The notes under the pieces were generated by a model, which worked only from the letters and a program-made list of their open reading frames with translations, searched no databases and had not been told where the DNA came from. From NCBI GenBank assembly GCA_002104945.1, contig MCFH01000074.1, positions 62,001 to 126,000 on the forward strand: a stretch of DNA of 64,000 nucleotides. The letters are read 5' to 3'. Numbering within the stretch: the first letter of the stretch is position 1; each line of letters opens with the position of its first letter. A program made the translations under genes and the position numbers. Source of the stretch: Piromyces finnis finn (taxonomy: Eukaryota; Fungi; Neocallimastigomycota). This document shows positions 1 to 64,000 of this stretch, in pieces.

Positions 1-446
1 AAGGAACGGTACCTTATGTTGAGGTCTTTTATTTCTTCATTCTTTTTGATTCGCATATCCCTAAGCTCCTTGAGAAGTTCTATTTGATCTTCCTTTACTC
101 CATAAAATTCTTCTAACATAGTGACTATCTTTTTAAGGGAAGGGTAGTGAGATTTTCTCTTTCCTCTACCTTCATCTTCTTCATCACTATCTTCAGTGTC
201 TTCATCACTTTCAAAGTCCTTATTAGGATTTAACACTTGAATAAGTTCATTTGGTGTTCCTGTAGTAGTAAACAAACAAGCTAGGAACACTATTTTTGGA
301 CTTTTAACATCTTGAAGCATAGTCCAATACTTTAATTGACTATACCAAGTCTTAATGTCCAAATTATCTTCAGTTAATCTAGTGACATGCTTTAATTCCT
401 TCATTAATTTAGCAAAGTTAATAGATTTATCTGCTCCAATACTCAT
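1..446 (-). mobile_element. Gag-like ORF of an LTR retrotransposon, running off the left window edge
   Basis: Open frame from ATG at 446 (MSIGADKSINFAKLMKELKHVTRLTEDNLDIKTWYSQLKYW...LEEFYGVKEDQIELLKELRDMRIKKNEEIKDLNIRYRS). Not in the ORF track because it has no stop in the window. Gag identity is by motif resemblance only. A candidate short LTR (TGTAAAGA...TTTAACA) lies at 811-966. Confidence 0.5.
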
Positions 447-3132: not shown

Positions 3133-4952
3133 TGTTAGAATTTTAGGTTTTTTAATATTTACTTTATTATGGTAATTTATTAATACTTCATTACAAAGAT
3201 TTAATTAACAATTACAAGTTTGTATTTATACTAAAATTTATGGCTTATGCTCTAATACATACATTATCAATACATTACATTATATTAAATACATTTTACT
3301 AATGAATAGAGTTTATAATAAAATTTGAGATTTTCTAACATAGATAATTATATATAATTATATTAAAATTTAAATCATATTTTATAATTAATGTAACTTT
3401 ATTAAATAGATTAATGTTTTATTAATTGATTTAAAAAAAATATAAAAACTCGAAAATAATTCAACAATTAAAATTTTCGAGAAACTATTATGTTTTATAA
3501 CTCTAATTAGTGATAAATAATATATTTGATTAATAACATAATTGATTAAGTTTATTAGTAAATAAAAATTTTATAAGAAAACATATTTTATATTAATTTG
3601 ATAAGTAGGGTTAGGGCATTATGACCAAACTTACCACATTTCATTTCAAAATACTTTATAATTTTTCCCATGTGCCCAAATTTTTTGCAATATTATTATT
3701 TTACAAATAAGAATATTGTAAAGTTCTATACAATTTAAGAAAATAATGGATTAGGTCATAATCATTAATTATGACAAGAATAACATTATTTGTTGGTTCC
3801 TTAACAAAAACTATTACATGGTTATGGTGACTTAATGATACCTACCTGTTCCCGGTATACTATATACCACTGGTTTAAATCTGTCATTCATCTTTTTTAG
3901 AAAACATAATTTTTAATTTTATTTTATTATTAAAATACTATAACCAATCACATAAAATCTTTTAATATTTTTTGAAGATAAATTCTTGTAATTTTATTTT
4001 GTTTTGGACTCTTTGAGTCGATATTCAATTCAATAATAGTATTAATAAATAAAATAAAAATATAAACCATGGTTTAAAATAAAATTTGTTATTGTTTTAG
4101 TGTTTTATTTAATTAATATTATAAATATACAACAACCTAGTGAGAAAACCTCAAGTTCGTTACAATAATAATATATCGGCATTAATGAGTTGTTAAAAAT
4201 AATATTAGTTTTTTTAAATGAATCTTATTTTTTTAATTAGTTTATTTAATATTAATTAATTGTTACCCTATTTATTTCTGGCCGGATATAAATAGTTTTC
4301 ATAAAATAAGCTATTATAGTTAAATAACATTTAAACAAACTTTAAAATACTTTGGCGCTAGGATTAAAGTAAATTATAGTAATAAATAATGCATAATAAT
4401 TATAATTAATTATAATTAATAAAAAATTGTAATTATTAAATTATTATATTATTTAATTTATATATACATATGTATATCCTTTTATTATAAGTCAACATTA
4501 TTTTTTTTCTAAAATTAATAAATAATAATTTTATATTTATTAATTTTAATATTTGAAAAAATTGAAATTAATAAAAGTTTTAATTAGTCTTTATAAAAGT
4601 AATTAAAATTAGCATTAAAAGAAATAATTTAAATTACTAAAACCCCTATTACTTATAATAATTATAATTAATAATTAATTAAGATAGTAATTATTAAATT
4701 ACTTAAACAAGATTTATTTCAGATTAACGAAAATAATACCCTTTAGAAGAAAATAAAAAAAATAGAATTAAGTCCTTATATAATGAAAGAAAGTAATTTA
4801 ATATTATAGAGAATTTGTATAATTGTTAACTCATGAACAGTTATTTTTCTTTTATTAATTGATTGAATTATTAAGAAATTTTAACTCGAGTAACATCCAC
4901 TACTTCTGGAAAAAAAAATAAAGAATAATAATAAATTTAATTTACAATTTAC

Positions 4953-5159
4953 TAATTTGTGTTATTTTGAAAGTCTTCTTTAATTATACAGTTATCAATT
5001 AAATTAGAAAATGATTTTATGATTCTAAACGTAAATTGTAACGTATTATAATTTATATTGATTTAAATATAATTTAATAAAATTTATTACCATAAAATCA
5101 TTTTGTAATTTAATCGATAACTGCACAATTAAAGAAGACTTTCAAAATAACACAAATTA
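4953..5159. repeat. MITE-like foldback: ~69-bp inverted arms with ~69-bp spacer
   Basis: 4953-5021 is the reverse complement of 5091-5159 with a few mismatches; TA at both outer edges. Confidence 0.6.
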
Positions 5160-6705
5160 TAATATATTTTATTATTTTCCATTTTTTTATTATAAATTTT
5201 GCATAGGTACATTACATTTTTTATATATAATATATCTTAATCTATAGATAATAATAAAATACTTCGTATAAATACAACTTACTATATGTTCTATATTATT
5301 ATAAATTATATTTGAATCATTATAATTATATAATATTAATTTATGTTTAGTCAATAATTTAATAGATTTATATCAAAAATATAGTTCTTCATTAAAAGGA
5401 CTTATCATCAAAATCTTTTTTAAATAATCATATAAGTATTCATGATAATCTAAATCAATTTGAAACCTTTTTCTATACAAGTGATTTTATTTATCATATA
5501 GATAAACATGTTATTTTAAAATTTGAAATTTGTAATTATAATTATAATATCTATGGTCAGATATAACTATTGTACCATTGATAAAACTAAGATTCCAGAA
5601 ATGAGTCAATTTTTGAAGACATATTTATGGAGGAAGAATTAATAAACTATGTATTAAAAATTAAATTTTATCTCTACCCTTCCTTTAGGCAATAAATTAA
5701 GATCTATTGTATTTAATTTATTGCCTAATCATTTTGAATTATAATTATAATTATAATTATAATTGAATAAATTGTGATTTTATAAAAATAAAAAATTATA
5801 ATTATTTTTTTTAAAAAAAAAAGAAAAATCATTCAATTTTTATTGAAATTAAACAAACTATCACGGATATCTCATTAAAATATGTAACAAATGTTTAATA
5901 GAAAATGATCTATTAAACATTTGTTTAATGTCTTATTACAATACAATAAATTAAAAGATTTCATCTATTTTTTTTATTTCAATAAAAGAAGATAAAATGC
6001 TTATTTAAAATAACTCATTTTATATTAATAGGAATAGAATAAAGAAATAAATTTATTATTAAAAGACTGGACTTTACCTTTTATTATTAAAAGAAAAATG
6101 TCCTTTAAATATTTGACTATATTTTGAAACTTTTTTATTTCCTAACCTTTATAAAATTTTATTTATTGTTTATTATCTATTTATTTATAAGCAAATGATA
6201 TATTATAATACAAATGTATTCATCATCGTTAAAATAAATAATCAACACCATTACATTGATTAAATTAAGTGTGGAATAAAAGTTCAAATAAAGCCTTTCT
6301 TTTTTTATTTTTATTACTTTTATTTTGTTTTTTGCTTTATTTTTGCTAGTTAGTTGGATTGCCATTTTCATTACAGAATTTTTTTATTTTTTCATTTTCA
6401 GATATAAACTTTTTAAAGTTTACCAAATTTATTAATTTTAAACTTTTTTAAACAAGTTAATAAATATTTAAATTAATTGTGTAACAAATAATATAAAAAT
6501 GGTTATATTATATTAATATAAAAAATTCTGTCGTTGTGTAATTAAAAATAGATATTCAAAATATATTGAAATACATTGGAATATATTACAATATTATTGT
6601 ATACAACTTTATTTGTCATTTCTGTCATTTTCAATTTATTATAAAATAAAGTTTAAAAAAGAAACATATATTTAAAATATTTATGTAAAAGTCATTATAA
6701 TAAAG

Positions 6706-7284
6706 AGTAATAGTCAAAGTAATAGTCAAAGTAATAGTAATAGTAATAGTAATAGTAATAGTAATAGTAATAGTAATAGTAATAGTAATAGTAATAGTAA
6801 TAGTAATAGTAATAGTAATAGTAATAGTAATAGTAATAGTAATAGTAATAGTAATAGTAATAGTAATAGTAATAGTCAAAGTAATAGTAATAGTAATAGT
6901 AATAGTAATAGTCAAAGTAATAGTAATAGTAATAGTAATAGTAATAGTAATAGTAATAGTAATAGTAATAGTAATAGTAATAGTAATAGTAATAGTAATA
7001 GTAATAGTAAAGTAATAGTAATAGTAATAGTAATAGTAATAGTAATAGTAATAGTAATAGTAATAGTAATAGTAATAGTAATAGTAATAGTAATAGTAAT
7101 AGTAATAGTAATAGTAATAGTAATAGTAATAGTAATAGTCAAAGTAATAGTAATAGTAATAGTCAAAGTAATAGTAATAGTAATAGTAATAGTAATAGTA
7201 ATAGTAATAGTAATAGTAATAGTAATAGTAATAGTAATAGTAATAGTAATAGTAATAGTAATAGTAATAGTAATAGTAATAGTA
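6706..7284 (+). repeat. Long (AGTAAT)n hexanucleotide microsatellite with interspersed AGTCAA variants
   Basis: About 580 bp read directly. It explains the spurious poly-TI ORFs. Confidence 0.97.
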
Positions 7285-10988: not shown

Positions 10989-12744
10989 ATGACTGTTAAT
11001 GAACCAACTTTAAGAAGTAAAGAATCTAAGAATTCTTTAGATGAAATTATAAATTCTCAAAAACAATTGGATGATGAATTACAACAATTAAAGAATCGTT
11101 ATTCTCGTTACAGCCAATTGGTTTCCTTTCAACAACAAGAAGAAGATTATTTATTAAAAAATAAGGAAAAAGTTAACTCAAAAAGAGTTTCTCTTTCTTT
11201 GAAAAGAAAAAAGGATGTTGTAAGTTTATTAAGTATTATTATTTTATAAAATTAATATATAATTTTATTTTTTATAATAATATTTATATTTTTTTATCTA
11301 TAATAATTCAACATTCAAATAGACTTATGGTTTAATGCCACACGACGACATTTTAGCAAAGGAAGAAGAACACGAAGATGAAAAGCAATCTTTTGAATCC
11401 ATGACTAAAACTGCTAATGCTTTTCTTAGTTCAATTGAAGAAAAACATAATGCTTTAAAAAAGAAAGATTTCGAGTTACTTCATTCTCCAATTAGCATAA
11501 AAGAAGATGAAGAAGAAAAACAAGAAAAGAATACTGAAAAAGAACCAGAAAAGGAAATGAATAGACTTTGTGATTTAGTTCAATCTTTATTGAGTGAAGC
11601 ACAAGGTGCTATTGATTCTAAGCCAGAGCTTAATCATCCAGATATTGGTAAAGAAGAGGATCCTGAAATTACTATTCCACAACGTGTACAATCCTTAAAC
11701 AGTCATCATACAAGCTTTAATGACACTTCTTCTATAAGAAATAAACATTTAAGTATTATGACTGATACAACTGCTATTGCTCAACCACTCAGTCCTGTTA
11801 ATAAACGATGTGGTGATGATTTCGATGATTTTGATGATTTTGGAATGTCAAAGTATGATGAATTAACTTCACCATATAATGCGTCTACCACTACAAATGA
11901 TGAATTCATGAAAAGTTATCCACCTAAATTCTATCCACCTCCACCAGAATTCTACTATGGACCACCAGTTGGTTATCCACCATATTTTGATCCTGCATAT
12001 GGACCAATACCGCCATATATGTGGGAAGAATTCCAAAAGCATAAAATGGGTTTAAATAGTGATGAAAGTAGTGGTTCTGAAGCTGCTGTTGCTGTTAATA
12101 GCCGTAAAGAAAATCAAGAAATCATTAAGACTACTACCACTACCACCACTACTACCGAAGTCAAAAAGGACAAAAAGGAAATTATTGAAGGTAAGGCTTT
12201 AGTTAAAAAGAGACGTCGTCATAAGCACCGTAAGCATATTCGTCCAGTAGATGCTGATGGAAATATTTGTGATAGTGATTCATGTCCAGTTCATTCAAAA
12301 AGTTTAGTAAAGAAGAAGCAATCATCCAAATTATTTAAAGCTCAATTTGGTTCTGATACCCAACTTTTCCTTTCTTTCTTTGCTTCTTTCTTTGTAACAT
12401 CCATTTTGGTTACAATTTCTTGTCTTTGGTCTGTCATTCAAGTTATGGCTGGTAATGTTAATGATAAGAACTTAAGTCGTCTTTTACAAAGTTCTTCAGA
12501 AAATGCTATTAGAAATAACAAGAAAAGAATCGATTTAATTTTAGACAAAGAATCTTCTGAAAGTACTGAATCTGAATTTGAAGAAGAAGAAAGCCAAATT
12601 GAAGAAATTGATGAAGATGATGTAGATGATGAAGGAAATGAAGAAAATGAAGAATCATCTAATAAATTTATTACTGCTACTTCCGCTTCTGATGATGAAG
12701 GAGAAGAATTAGATATGAACTCCGAAACAATTTCATTATCTTAA
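10989..12744 (+). CDS. Hypothetical ~550-aa membrane protein, 2 exons (10989-11219, 11323-12744)
   Basis: Phase-0 GTAAGT...TAG intron at 11220-11322 joins the two ORFs in frame. Contains a coiled-coil-like N-terminus, a Pro/Tyr-rich patch, poly-Thr, basic KKRRRHKHRKH, a hydrophobic segment (LFLSFFASFFVTSILVTISCLWSV) and an acidic tail. Confidence 0.8.
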
Positions 12745-13579: not shown

Positions 13580-14617
13580 ACTAAAGATTTTATTAAATTA
13601 TGTTATGAATACCCAGAGTTTGCCTATGGCTTCTACTGGCTATTGAAAGCAAGAAGCGGATACAAGTTGGATGCTAGAGTTGCCAAAGCTGCCAAATTTG
13701 TTGATCCAGTTTGTCCTAACTACTGTCCATGTTGCAAGTGTGGTGTTCAAAGTATTAAACATTGGTTATTAGATTGTCAAACATTTAGAGATATCCGTAT
13801 TAAACATTATGATTCCATAGTCCAGCTACTAAATTTTTTCAGTCAACGTAATTCCAATAGTCCTATCAATAATAATGAAAATGTTAATATCAGTAGAGAT
13901 AGCAATAACAGTAATAGTAATAGTAACAATAGTAGTAATAACAATAGTAGTAATAGAAATAATAATATTAGTAATGATAACAATAGTGAAGATAATAATT
14001 CTAATTTAGATAGTAATTTAGTTAATGATAGTAATAGTTCTAATAATCCGGTGAATATTAATGTGTATGATTATTCTAGTGTGTGCAGTAAAATATTTAA
14101 ATTCCTTCTTGGGGGAAGAAGTTTTAACAATATTAATTACAATTCAAGGGAATGGAAAGAACTTTGTAAGCGTCAGATTCAATCTGGTACTAACGAAGGA
14201 ACACCATTCTTGACGGTAACCGCGGAACTTCTAACCAAAATCATGCCTTTTGCTATTGGCCAGCAATGGTCAATGTTCAAAAGGTTTGAAGCAACATCCA
14301 AGAGCGTCAATGCTGAAGAAACAGTAAGACAGGCCAGGAGGGCCAGCGCAACCAATGGAGATCATAATTTTGTTCCATGACAAAATTTTGATCTTTGGCT
14401 CGGTGTCCCATTGGAAGTCAAATACAATTATTATACTTTAGTATGATAGTGGCTTTCTTACTTTAATTAAAATTACTAGAATACATTATACCCAATTTTT
14501 ATTCATTTGTGTTTATTTAAACATATTTTTTTTATTTTTATTTTTATTTTTTAATTTTTTATTACATGTATTATAATTTTAATTAAATTAATAATAAAGT
14601 TTAAAATATTTGATGCC

Positions 14618-14654
<37 letters not shown>
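13580..14654 (+). mobile_element. 5'-truncated LINE copy (ORF2 C-terminus, 3' UTR, poly(A))
   Basis: Near-identical to the 3' end of the LINE at 61313-64000. CPCCKC...KHWLLDC zinc-knuckle-like motif; ends GATGCCGTT+(A)34. Confidence 0.93.
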
Positions 14655-14658
<4 letters not shown>

Positions 14659-15073: not shown

Positions 15074-15155
15074 CGTCACCTGCAGGACTCGAACCTGCGC
15101 TCCCAAAGGGAAATGGCTTAGCAGGCCACCGCGTTAACCACTCCGCCAAAGTGAC
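15074..15155 (-). tRNA. tRNA-Ser(GCU)
   Basis: GTCACTT...AGGTGACG acceptor stem, CTGCTAA anticodon loop, long variable arm, GGTTCGAGTCC T-loop; 82 nt, with a T-run downstream. Confidence 0.96.
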
Positions 15156-31304: not shown

Positions 31305-31386
31305 CGTCACCTGCAGGACTCGAACCTGCGCTCCCAAAGGGAAATGGCTTAGCAGGCCACCGCGTTAACCACTCCGCCAAAGTGAC
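31305..31386 (-). tRNA. tRNA-Ser(GCU)
   Basis: Identical to 15074-15155. Confidence 0.96.
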
Positions 31387-34342: not shown

Positions 34343-34424
34343 CGTCACCTGCAGGACTCGAACCTGCGCTCCCAAAGGGAAATGGCTTAGCAGGCCACCG
34401 CGTTAACCACTCCGCCAAAGTGAC
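34343..34424 (-). tRNA. tRNA-Ser(GCU)
   Basis: Identical to 15074-15155. Confidence 0.96.
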
Positions 34425-59098: not shown

Positions 59099-59995
59099 AA
59101 TTTTTATTTAAAAGAAACTTTTTTTTTTATTTTCAACATAAAAAATTAAGATTATAGAAAAACTTTAATATTTAAATTAGTTCTTTTTTATGTAAGGATT
59201 TTCACAAAAATAACATTAGCCACATATCAAAGTATAAAATAGTATATTAACACATATATATATGTTTAAACATCATGTGGTAAATAATATCATGTGATAT
59301 GAACTTTGACAATATTGTTTTTATGTTTAAAGTTTTTAATCGTATAATATCACATAAAATCTTTTTATTACTACCATTAATTATTAGACTTTAGCTATTT
59401 TTCTTTTTCTATATTATTCAAAGAATATTCTTGAATCATCCCTTTATAAAATAGCATTAGCCACATTTTATAGTATAAAAGAATGATATATTACACATGG
59501 ATACATAAATATATGGTTGAATGTATCACATGATATTTAATCATGTGATGTGAATAATAGTATCTAAAAATTGATACGGTCAGGGTTAGAATTTAACTTT
59601 AAATAATATATTTTATTAAAAACTTTAATGCGTTCCAATATTTCTATTCTGTCTAAATACTAAAACGTTAATTCTGTCGTTGTTAGCTAAAAATTTAACT
59701 AAAATAAGAAGCCTTCATAATAATAATTATTCCCTAGTCTATCTATACTAATTAAGGCTAACTTAATAATTAGTTGTCCAATGATAAAGCTGAAACTCTA
59801 TGGATTATACATTTACATTATTCTTTTACATTGCATGTTATTACATTTGTCATATATTTACATTTACATTCTTACACATTGTAGAAATAATATAACAAAA
59901 ACTCTATAAATTTAATATTAAGAAAAATTTTATTAATATAATAATATGTTAAGTCACATATTATTTTTATATCAAAATTTTAACACTAAAAAAAT

Positions 59996-60313
59996 TTAAT
60001 AAGTGATGACTAAGGCTAATGCCAAAAACTTACTATATTCCTTAATCAATTTAAGTGTAATCATTAGTGGGCGGTTGATGCGTGATCAAATTGACTATAA
60101 GAGGCTTGACATTGTAGTTGGGAAATATCATACAACGACATACATCTAATGTACATGGATTAAGAGAGCATCGAAGCTGAAGATACAGTATGACAGACCA
60201 GGAGGGTCACAACCACCTAGCAATAGAAATGAGCCAACGTTTCTCTATGAACCACCATTGGGGCTAACACCAATTGATGGGAGAAATGCACTCGGAAGTT
60301 AAAAAAAAAAAAA
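59996..60313 (+). mobile_element. Non-coding poly(A) retroposon (SINE-like), 5'-truncated copy 2
   Basis: 16-bp TSD TTAACACTAAAAAAAT (59980-59995, 60314-60329); ends GGAAGTT+(A)13; homologous to the 3' part of 2154-2699. Confidence 0.88.
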
Positions 60314-60829
60314 TTAACACTAAAAAAATATATATCTTAATATGCCTTGTCATTTTATCTAAATTTTTTTTACTTAAAATAATAATTTCTTTTTTTTTTT
60401 TTTAATCATAAATATTATTCTATAAAATAATAAATATTAAAAAAAAAAAAAAAATATCAATTATAACATTGACATGATGTATTTTACACTTTTAACATTC
60501 TTTTAAATTGTAGTTTTAATTATGATGAATAATAAAAACTCAACTATATATAAAATTTATTCTAGGTCATGTAGATTAATAACCCATAAATGAATGTTGT
60601 GTTATTAACAACCCAACATATATAAAAACTTATAACAAATGTATAAAAAATATTAAAAATGAATTTATAGAAATAGTATATACTTTTCTTTTTTAAAAAA
60701 AAAAAAGTCTGACACAACTTGTGAATCTCTTTGAATAATAAATTTTTTATATCAAGAATATAGAATTATCAAACTTTTTTTTTTATAAAGTCATGTAAAT
60801 TTTATTTTTTTAATGACGTTATATTAGAA

Positions 60830-61309
60830 TAAAAATTAAAAAATAAAAAAATATATCTTAACACAAATGAATAAAAAATGGGTATAATGTATTCAAGTCA
60901 TTTTAATTAAAGTAAGATAGCCACTATGATACTAAAGTATAATAATTGTAGTTGACTTCCAATGGGACACCGAGCCAAAGATTAAAAATTTTATCATGAG
61001 TCAAAATTATGATCTCCATTGGTTGCGCTGGCCATCCTGGCCTGTCTTACTGTTTCTTCAGCATTGACGCTCTTGGATGTTGCTTCAAACCTTTTGAACA
61101 TTGACCATTGCTGGCCAATAGCAAAAGGCATGATTTTGGTTAGAAGTTCCGCGATTACCGTCAAGAATGGTGTTCCTTCGTTAGTGCCAGATTGAATTAT
61201 TACTATTATTTAACTAAATTACTATCTAAATTAGAATTATCATTTTCACTATTGCTATCATTACTAATATTATTATTTCTACTAATACTATTATTATTAT
61301 TGCTATCTC

Positions 61310-61312
<3 letters not shown>
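60830..61312 (-). mobile_element. Older, internally deleted 3' fragment of the same LINE family
   Basis: Homologous to 61430-62100 with a deletion near 61197 and substitutions; left boundary approximate. Confidence 0.85.
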
Positions 61313-61347
<35 letters not shown>

Positions 61348-64000
61348 GGCATCAAATATTTTAAACTTTATTATTAATTTAATTAAAATTATAATACATG
61401 TAATATAAAAATTAAAATAAAATAAAAATAAAAAAAAATATGTTTAAATAAACACAAATGAATAAAAATTGGGTATAATGTATTCTAGTAATTTTAATTA
61501 AAGTAAGAAAGCCACTATCATACTAAAGTATAATAATTGTATTTGACTTCCAATGGGACACCGAGCCAAAGATCAAAATTTTATCATGGGACAAAATTAT
61601 GATCTCCATTGGTTGCGCTGGCCCTCCTGGCCTGTCTTACTGTTTCTTCAGCATTGACGCTCTTGGATGTTGCTTCAAACCTTTTGAACATTGACCATTG
61701 CTGGCCAATAGCAAAAGGCATGATTTTGGTTAGAAGTTCCGCGGTTACCGTCAAGAATGGTGTTCCTTCGTTAGTACCAGATTGAATCTGACGCTTACAA
61801 AGTTCTTTCCATTCCCTTGAATTGTAATTGATATTGTTAAAACTTCTTCCCCCAAGAAGGAATTTAAATATTTTACTGCACACACTAGAATAATCATACA
61901 CATTAATATTCACCGGATTATTAGAACTATTACTATCATTAACTAAATTACTATCTAAATTAGAATTATTATCTTCACTATTGCTATCATTACTAATATT
62001 ATTATTTCTATTACTACTATTGTTATTATTACTATTGTTACTATTACTATTGTTATTATTACTATTGTTACTATTACTATTAATATTATTACTATCTCTA
62101 CTGATATTATCAATTTCATTATTATTGATAGGACTATTGGAATTACGTTGACTGAAAAAATTTAATAGCTGGACTATGGAATCATAATGTTTAATACGGA
62201 TATCTCTAAATGTTGGACAATCTAATAACCAATGTTTAATACTTTGATCTCCACACTTGCAACATGGACAGTAGTTAGGACAAACTGGATCAACAAATTT
62301 GGCAGCTTTGGCAACTCTAGCATCCAACTTGTATCCGCTTCTTGCTTTCAATAGCCAGTAGAAGCCATAGGCAAACTCTGGGTACTCATAACATAATTTA
62401 ATAAAATCTTTAGTATCAATAAACTTATTATCATCATAATATTGCGCTTTGATTGAATTCCCTTTGAGATCTTTCCAATAAAAGTTTTTAACTGCTTTAA
62501 CATCTCCATGTTTCTTTAGTTTTTTATCAAGTGTCCTACTTGATTTGCACCACGTGTATTTTCTAAATTTAGGAATGTAATTGACAAGGTGTGAGATAAT
62601 ACAATTTGAGTTTTTCCATTTGTTAAAACATCTAACCTGAGCTAATGCACATTTGGCTGACAATGGAGGAATATTCAAATCTTTTGAGATAGAGTATAAA
62701 GATATAAACGATACAGCTTTATGAACTCCGGCAACCCATCGTATTCCTTTGTTAACATGCTTCTGTGCAATCCTAGACCTGGCTTTGTTGGATCCAAGTA
62801 ATGGTGCAAAGTATGAAACTCTGCTAATCACTTGTGAGTTAAGTACTAGCTTTTTGAAGGGAATAGGAATATTAGGATTTCTTAAGAATTTACTGACTGA
62901 GAAAAGTCCTTTCAAAACCTTGTTATTAAGAGCTTTAATAACTGGTTTAAGGGACAGATTCTTATCAAATGGAACACCAAGATAAGTATAACAATCAGTA
63001 GTTGGAATGGGTTGTCCTGCTAAGTAAAATGTTGGATCTCTCTTGTTCTGATTTTCTATTGATTCAGGACGAATCACCATCGTTGAACACTTCTGGATAC
63101 CAAATTCCATTTCATTATACAAGGCCCATTCATTAACTCTTCTAAGCATCTTTTTTAAGCATCCTCTTGTTGGAGCACAAATAACTATATCATCTGCAAA
63201 AAGTCCACCACAGCATCGAGTGTCACCTAAACTGACTCCGAGATCTTCACACTCTTTAAATATATCATTAATAAAGAGATTAAAGAGAATAGGAGAAAGA
63301 GGGCATCCTTGACGGACTCCTTTCTTCACATCAAAAGATTTCGAGAATTGTCCATCTAATTTGACATTAGCCTTAGATGTTAAATATAAATTTTTGATGA
63401 ATTGTAAACTCTTACCTCGGATTCCTAAACAATCTAATTTATGGAGAATATTACCGATTGGGACTGAATCGTATGCTTTCCTGAGATCTAAAAAGGCCAA
63501 ATATGTCTCTTTATTATCTAATTGACGTCTACGGCATATTTCTTGGATTGAAATGAAAAGACTGATACTTTCTTCCTTTTTTCGAAAACCAAATTGTTCA
63601 GGTCTAATGAAATTATTCTTTAGACCATATTCTGAGATTCTAGTGGTGACAATTTTGGAAATCAACTTAATACCATTATTGATAAGTGATATACCTCGAT
63701 AGTTATCACAATCTGTCAAATCTCCCTTCTTAGGAATAGAAACAATACTGGATTCATTCCATGAGTTGGGGAAGTCTCCATCCCAAATACGGTTGAATAA
63801 TTTAAGAATAAAATTTAAACCATAAGCATCATTATCTGAAGTGGTATTACCGGAAGAATTATTATCTGTAGCATTATTAGAATCATTACTTGATGGAATT
63901 AATGCTTTGTAAAATTCAATTGGAATACCATCCGGACCTGATGCTTTATAATTCGGAGTAGAGAGGATAGCTGACTTGACTTCATCAATACTAATATCTT
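61313..64000 (-). mobile_element. LINE (non-LTR retrotransposon): uninterrupted ORF2 (RT plus C-terminal CCHC; stop at 61584) continuing off the right edge, 3' UTR, poly(A) 61313-61344
   Basis: KASGPDGIP, NYRGISL, GVRQGCPLSPILFNLFIND, FADD, YLG. The frame is open from 64000, so the ORF track start at 63719 is not the true start. Clade not determined. Confidence 0.96.

Follow-up and report, generated by a model that had tools for sequence, protein, structure and literature searches.

How LINEs choose their RNA, and how SINEs hijack that choice, is understood in only a few animal systems, in which recognition rests on a shared 3′ tail or on poly(A) alone. The eel elements UnaL2 and UnaSINE1 are reported to form a ‘stringent’ pair that shares a 3′ stem-loop (Kajikawa and Okada 2002), and the general principle of stringent LINE-SINE pairs has been described (PMC5786205, PMC3747384). 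L1 and Alu form a ‘relaxed’ partnership that depends on poly(A) (see also PMC2666806, PMC11260458); Alu is not known to contain any piece of L1, and it gains access to ORF2p by way of the ribosome and SRP9/14. LINE-derived pieces can also make up the middle body of a SINE; in the described cases, bipartite deletion derivatives supplied sequence of the 5′ regions of RTE and Vingi LINEs (Kojima 2018, PMC5786205). In fungi, the SINEs Mg-SINE, Foxy, and EGH24-1 are short, non-coding, A-tailed elements of Ascomycota that are thought to depend on LINEs.

Here, we analyze a window (i.e., the whole stretch of DNA under study, 64,000 nucleotides long) of the Piromyces finnis genome. This window is very AT-rich (13–34% GC) and holds two copies of a SINE-like element and three pieces of a resident LINE (Table 1). 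The two elements share one short structured segment, hereafter the RNA module. Like a stringent pair, the locus combines a non-autonomous element with a LINE-derived structured RNA whose structure is kept and whose presumed role is RT template recognition. In stringent pairs, however, it is the extreme 3′ terminus of the UTR that is shared, and short repeats form the tails, whereas here the module lies in the LINE coding sequence, the two 3′ ends have nothing in common, and a long poly(A) closes each element. The locus lacks the shared 3′ terminus, reaching up to the tail, that marks a stringent pair, the shared part being internal. Long poly(A) tails, TSDs of 10–17 bp, frequent 5′ truncation of the LINE, and the lack of a shared 3′ terminus are features in common with L1/Alu, but the SINE described here carries a LINE-derived, covarying RNA module. 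As in the bodies described by Kojima, the LINE fragment sits in the SINE interior and not in its tail; it differs from them in being a structured piece of ~50 nt from the 3′ end of the ORF, with nothing taken from the LINE 5′ end. The element is short, non-coding, and A-tailed like Mg-SINE, Foxy, and EGH24-1, which are from a different phylum. No SINE from Neocallimastigomycota was reported in the full-text literature that we searched, which is not proof of absence, and Repbase was not covered.

A young SINE-like family and its resident LINE

The SINE-like element is a real non-autonomous retroposon family with the hallmarks of target-primed reverse transcription, and it is young and recently active. 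The family body, or master, is 535 nt long. A search of the genome (56.46 Mb, 232 contigs) with copy 1 as the query gave at least 384 candidates, 30 of which were fetched. All 30 share one common 5′ end and are flanked by a TSD (10–17 bp, median 13 bp), 27 are identical over 533 nt, and their poly(A) tails range from A26 to A129, with a median of 39 A. Pattern counts of the 5′ head and of the 3′ tail found ~206 copies with the fixed 5′ end and ~304 tails in the genome, i.e., ~300 dispersed copies, with a sharply fixed 5′ end in about two-thirds of them. Truncated copies exist (copy 2, L180, L181), as do older ones (copy 2 at 91% identity, L181 at 85%). Copy 2 is 5′-truncated at about master position 229, and the stretch in which it aligns with copy 1 is the 3′ 300 nt. 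The longest ORF is 52 aa, making the element non-coding, and none of the genomic copies runs into an RT ORF. The element is thus short, non-coding, interspersed, and present in many copies, as expected of a SINE; its TSDs, 3′ A tail, and 5′ truncations are those of LINE-type target-primed reverse transcription. Relatives of the SINE were not found in foreign contigs (658 kb of fetched loci). It explains ~300 unannotated repeats of the Piromyces finnis genome and gives Neocallimastigomycota a SINE-like family that is abundant and was active very recently.

The element starts with G-TCGTTCC. The G ahead of TCGTTCC is found in 18 of the 30 fetched copies, where it lies outside the TSD (5′ junctions of L002–L030), and is absent in six. 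Full-length LINE copies also carry one additional base (C or A) at the 5′ junction. In both elements, the transcript may truly begin with the extra base, or the base may have been added without a template, from a cap.

The ‘SINE’ label rests solely on a perfect B box (GGTTCGANNCC, master positions 59–69), found in only 15 of 20,000 shuffles, as no head derived from a tRNA or another small RNA was recognized. The best A-box match in the SINE head has three mismatches. ARAGORN found no tRNA in the head at default thresholds and only implausible cloverleaves at a 70% threshold, and Rfam gave no match on SINE copy 1 or the master head at E up to 10. Global alignment of the head to the tRNA-Ser(GCT) of the window is co-linear and weakly above shuffles (z 2.4–3.2), in a comparison limited to two distinct tRNAs. 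A T5 run at positions 11–15 could terminate Pol III. Transcription by Pol III from the B box is plausible and unproven, a possibility inferred from sequence alone.

An intron-like, AT-rich stretch lies at master positions ~131–186 (window ~2571–2516, minus strand), with a perfect fungal 5′ splice site (GTAAGT), a branch-like CTAAT, and TAG. We rejected a retained intron, as the spliced junction was absent from the genome search.

Full copies of the resident LINE (L043–L048) measure 5658 nt plus poly(A) and have a single ORF of 1508 aa, which encodes an N-terminal domain, a low-complexity region, an endonuclease-like region (for which relatives match PF03372), RVT_1, and a CX1CX7HX4C knuckle. 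The TSDs are ~10–14 bp, and the A tails are long. The genome holds over 1800 LINE candidates, among which dozens of intact 1513-aa frames are identical at ~100%. Near-identical copies of the SINE and near-identical frames of the LINE make both elements very young, and both leave the same insertion hallmarks, which gives circumstantial support for a partnership.

Table 1. Coordinates of the SINE, LINE, and RNA module features (window positions unless columns of the module alignment are named)
Feature	Position	Strand	Details
SINE copy 1	2154–2699	minus	Full length; 94.6% identical to family master; A-rich tail
TSD of SINE copy 1	2714–2700 and 2153–2139		15 bp, ATTATGGAGTTATTT; flanks SINE copy 1
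B box of SINE copy 1	2643–2633	minus	Last C mutated to T
Module remnant, SINE copy 1	2241–2304	minus	R1 30.1 bits; H0 and H1 intact, H2 lost
SINE copy 2	59996–60313	plus	Master ~229–535; 91% identical to master; A13 tail
TSD of SINE copy 2	59980–59995 (5′) and 60314–60329 (3′)	plus	16 bp, TTAACACTAAAAAAAT
RNA module, SINE copy 2	60163–60212	plus	R1 (LINE-only covariance model) 42.9 bits, E 2e-9
H0, SINE copy 2	60170–60172/60192–60194
H1, SINE copy 2	60176–60179/60186–60189
H2, SINE copy 2	60196–60199/60205–60208
LINE copy, 5′-truncated	13580–14655	plus	LINE 4589–5658; 95% identity; poly(A); stop codon 14378–14380
LINE module	14299–14348	plus	R1 76.8 bits
Older LINE 3′ fragment	60818–61306	minus	92% identity
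LINE module, older fragment	61026–61075	minus	H2 loop AGGAT
Young LINE copy	61345–64000	minus	99.85% identical to full-length reference L044; runs off window end
Poly(A) of young LINE copy	~61310–61344		Seen as a T run
LINE module, young copy	61616–61665	minus
H0, 3 bp	Columns 8–10 with 30–32		GTC/GAC; closes H1
H1, 4 bp	Columns 14–17 with 24–27		GCTG/CAGT; 6-nt loop varies freely
H2, 4 bp	Columns 34–37 with 43–46		GGCC/GGCC in resident LINE; loop AGNAG
H0 pair	Columns 9–31		States UA, CG
H2 pair	Columns 34–46		States GC, GU
H2 pair	Columns 35–45		States GC, AU, GU
H2 pair	Columns 36–44		States CG, AU, UA, UG
H2 pair	Columns 37–43		States CG, UG

An RNA module shared by LINE and SINE

The SINE and the LINE are homologous in one segment only. 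In a sensitive BLAST search, master positions 401–450 matched LINE 5341–5393 at 84.9% over 53 columns as the sole significant match, with E values (4.8e-9 against the window, 4.3e-10 against the full LINE) that exclude chance. The LINE segment lies 26–78 nt ahead of the stop codon, inside the last 26 codons, and encodes the peptide KSVNAEETVRQARRAS. The module is 85 nt from the poly(A) in the SINE and ~310 nt in the LINE, and foreign LINE contigs match the SINE in the same 50 nt only. No significant similarity was found between the last 85 nt of the SINE and 19 LINE tails (z below 2), and none between the SINE and the LINE 5′ end. Homology of the SINE tail to a conserved box in the LINE 3′-UTR (GGAAGTCAAA versus GGAAGTT-An) is tempting by eye and not significant. 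We also rejected a RIME/ingi-type or bipartite deletion derivative, as the SINE has no similarity to either LINE end and matches at 401–450 only.

As for the donor of the segment, no LINE with the SINE-type stem (GACC/GGTC) was found in the genome. The SINE-type module, with one mismatch allowed, occurs at 240 places, and nearly all those listed are SINE copies, with a few singly mutated LINE copies; modules of any type number 923, leaving ~680 of the LINE type. The H2 loop AGGAG is found only in the resident LINE and the SINE, and the H1 loop AAGAAA is also common to both. Because these loops are shared and no LINE with the SINE-type stem was found in the genome, the module most likely came from the lineage of the resident LINE, and the compensatory change likely arose in the SINE lineage.

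An earlier note on this DNA had already made several of these points. It had described the two copies (2154–2699, minus; 59996–60313, plus), both A-tailed and each flanked by a separate TSD (15 or 16 bp), and a motif at 60166–60209 matching LINE 14302–14345 and 61619–61662 at 37 of 44 nt, and both descriptions held; with the master, the match extends to 53 columns. Its statements that the body has no other similarity to the LINE (in agreement with the single BLAST match), that GGCC/GGCC versus GACC/GGTC is a compensatory pair, that the older LINE copy near 61030 (module 61026–61075) has an AGGAT loop, that a hairpin GCTG-AAGAAA-CAGT lies upstream, and that the motif falls inside the C-terminal codons of the LINE ORF were all confirmed, the resident LINE having a single ORF. 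One claim failed: the 15-nt deletion in copy 1 removes not the hairpin GCTG/CAGT, as was proposed, but the GACC/GGTC hairpin.

The LINE module is kept as an RNA structure under purifying selection. Genomic copies decay neutrally, as pseudogenes, and are thus uninformative on covariation, so we compared diverged LINE lineages instead. Ten lineages were collected via protein homology (45–61% identity over the C-terminal 359 aa) and about ten more, some of them decayed fragments, via a pattern scan of metagenomes. The metagenome pattern was loose, yielding 120 loci that were mostly unrelated soil contigs, with ~15 useful ones. As the pattern fixed columns 4–28, part of the H1 invariance is built into the rows that came from the scan; the pattern did not cover H2 or column 31, and the ten protein-derived lineages are free of that bias. 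The comparison comprised 17–20 related LINEs on other AT-rich contigs (21–33% GC), which are likely gut-fungal.

Unaided, RNAalifold predicts three helices (H0, H1, and H2), which make up a module of ~45 nt that both the resident LINE and related LINEs carry within their last 26 codons. The share of paired cells is 97.1% with the SINE rows and 97.9% for LINEs only, compared to 9–38% in slid controls, and in none of 500 shuffles was the paired share, the number of cells with a double change, or the covariation score as high as observed. Placing the compensatory double changes on a tree of 14 intact lineages, inferred from the 270 aa that precede the module, gives at least six separate origins: L147, L049/L050, L051, L058, L085, and L056/L057. 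For instance, the sister of L147, L079, keeps GC (support 100/99), and L052 represents an A.C intermediate of the L049/L050 change. The double changes turn Ala-Ala into Thr-Val, Asp-Ser, or Val-Ile; because they alter the amino acids yet keep the pairing, the pairing and not the peptide is conserved. The block is kept at the nucleotide level in all lineages, with nearly frozen synonymous sites: the commonest codon fills 95% of the cells in the module (1.27 codons per column) versus 79% (2.05) in conserved upstream columns. The few synonymous variants that the module does have are confined to a loop or to pairs with compensation, except for CAA in L058, which unpairs the outer H2 pair. With its three helices, the shared segment qualifies as a conserved stem-loop, although each helix is only 3–4 bp long. 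The RNA module explains the conserved nucleotide block of the LINE ORFs; a LINE clade of the poly(A) type thus keeps a tiny RNA structure inside its coding sequence, at the cost of amino-acid changes.

The SINE retains, selectively, exactly this LINE module. A covariance model built from LINEs only (R1) scored the SINE master at 46.8 bits (E 2e-10) and matched nothing in the window besides the SINE copies and the three LINE pieces. Within columns 4–47, the master keeps 23 of the 23 LINE-invariant columns. Its five differences from the resident LINE, all in columns that are variable among LINEs too, leave every pair intact, and one double change (GC to AU) is among them (P 0.01–0.03 in a neutral simulation). 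Within the SINE lineage, there is one compensatory event only. The decayed copy 2 has lost one H0 pair through a G-to-A change. When only the 3′ part of the SINE or of the LINE is folded locally, the module is present in either case; in the MFE structure of the complete 535-nt SINE, the H2 region has other pairing partners, and the whole SINE folds no better than shuffles (z +0.26).

Different deletions of 14–15 nt in or next to H2 are seen in the two older full-length SINE copies examined, copy 1 and L002 (1601–1652), and these may reflect a deletion-prone spot or a coincidence. The 15-nt deletion of copy 1 (ACCAGGAGGGTCACA) is private, its junction occurring once in the genome. We rejected it as a sign that the hairpin is dispensable, since it is private and post-insertional.

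Proposed template selection and rival readings

The mechanism that we propose can be rationalized into three steps. (i) The non-coding, poly(A)-tailed SINE-like element would be copied by target-primed reverse transcription via the machinery of the resident LINE. (ii) The module would act in cis, as the mark that the LINE protein, or its RNP, recognizes when selecting an RNA for reverse transcription. (iii) The SINE would mimic this module, placed 85 nt ahead of its poly(A), with nothing else derived from the LINE. We lean toward the view that the LINE machinery uses the module to select RNA, a view inferred from sequence alone, without binding data. The recognition step is further weakened by the lack of any experiment or RNA data and by the position of the module, which is not at the 3′ end of the LINE or the SINE. 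A bolder reading, that an L1-like poly(A) LINE clade of anaerobic gut fungi selects its template via a two-hairpin module in the last codons of its own ORF and that the SINE copied exactly that, could equally well prove right or wrong. If true, it would describe a natural hybrid of ‘stringent’ and ‘relaxed’ LINE-SINE recognition and provide a compact, mutable handle for studying LINE cis-preference and how parasites break it. In any case, the module offers a 45-nt target for mutational tests of template selection. The inference of the earlier note, that a non-autonomous family borrowed an RT signal of the LINE, is supported, with the recognition step remaining inferred in the absence of binding or mobilization data. 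Neither of the two outcomes that it had named as refuting this idea came about: longer copies extending into an RT ORF were not found (206 copies have one fixed 5′ end), and covariation exists among diverged LINE lineages, where it is stronger than the earlier note could see, the genomic copies being uninformative.

Two rival readings concern the function of the module. It is possible, though less likely, that the 50 nt are a functionless fossil of a chimeric origin, by template switching followed by tail exchange, that looks special as the LINE side is constrained. Along these lines, SINE bodies hold LINE-derived pieces without proven function (PMC5786205), no LINE tail is significantly similar to the SINE tail past the module, and both copy 1 and L002 lost part of H2. 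However, a fossil would have to coincide with the one ~50-nt RNA-constrained block of a 5.7-kb LINE (a chance of roughly 1%), and the retention of all 23 LINE-invariant columns, together with five differences that break no pair (P 0.01–0.03), is not expected of a functionless piece. The flanks have no residual similarity, so the SINE side is selectively conserved too, and the deletion in copy 1 is private and post-insertional. Alternatively, the module may be functional without being recognized by the RT or ORF protein, serving a host factor (in stability, export, localization, or silencing evasion) or translation near the LINE stop codon, and whatever the host does for the LINE in this way would benefit the SINE as well. 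This reading draws on the location of the module, 26 codons before the stop and adjoining a strong stop-codon hairpin, and away from the 3′ end where reverse transcription starts. We consider it unlikely: a role in translation alone does not account for retention of the module in the SINE, which lacks an ORF, and the SINE loops match those of its own resident LINE and not the commoner variants, which fits co-evolution with the LINE better than with a host factor.

A third rival concerns transcription. The element may not be a Pol III SINE at all but a non-coding retroposon transcribed by Pol II and mobilized like a processed transcript. In its favor, ARAGORN and Rfam recognize no tRNA, 5S, or 7SL head, the T5 run at 11–15 could stop Pol III, the G before TCGTTCC (present in 18 of 30 copies, missing from six) could be cap-derived, and 535 nt is long for a SINE. 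Against it, the B box sits at 59–69, where a tRNA-type promoter would have it, and is rare in shuffles (15/20,000); the resemblance to tRNA-Ser, albeit weak, is co-linear (z 2.4–3.2); a 5′ end that is sharply fixed in ~2/3 of copies is expected from an internal promoter; and no spliced copies exist despite the intron-like stretch. On balance, we consider the Pol II reading less likely than not. Recognition of the module by the LINE machinery remains our preferred account of the shared segment.

The LINE 3′ region and its surroundings

The 3′ region of the LINE (181 nt) folds with a z of −3.5. A strong hairpin spans the stop codon (window 14350–14400, plus strand; L044:9283–9325), in which the DHNF codons (GATCATAATTTT) pair with AAAATTTTGATC immediately past the stop. 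An inverted repeat that looks similar by eye is present in related LINEs, and the SINE is without it. Further downstream, the conserved 3′-UTR box, approximately GG(A/G)AGTCAAA followed by AATTATTATAC (window ~14424–14450, plus strand), is found ~40–60 nt past the stop in most LINE lineages (L049, L050, L053, L055–L057).

On contig C1 (1537993–1550399), LINE 3′ modules are spaced ~942 bp apart, and in the window, two LINE 3′ pieces adjoin head to tail at 60818–61345; both sets look like arrays of LINE 3′ fragments. A repetitive stretch at 6697–7284 (plus strand) shows 73–77% identity to the low-complexity part of the LINE coding sequence, which is rich in Asn and Ser. Upstream of the truncated LINE, an ORF of 469 aa (11335–12744, plus strand) is without Pfam matches and does not belong to the LINE. 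Three identical tRNA-Ser(GCT) genes lie within 20 kb on the minus strand (15074–15155, 31305–31386, and 34343–34424), one of them 420 bp from the poly(A) end of a LINE. An Rfam tRNA search of the genome returned ~2900 candidates, and the identical scores of many of them suggest that the tRNA gene families are very large.
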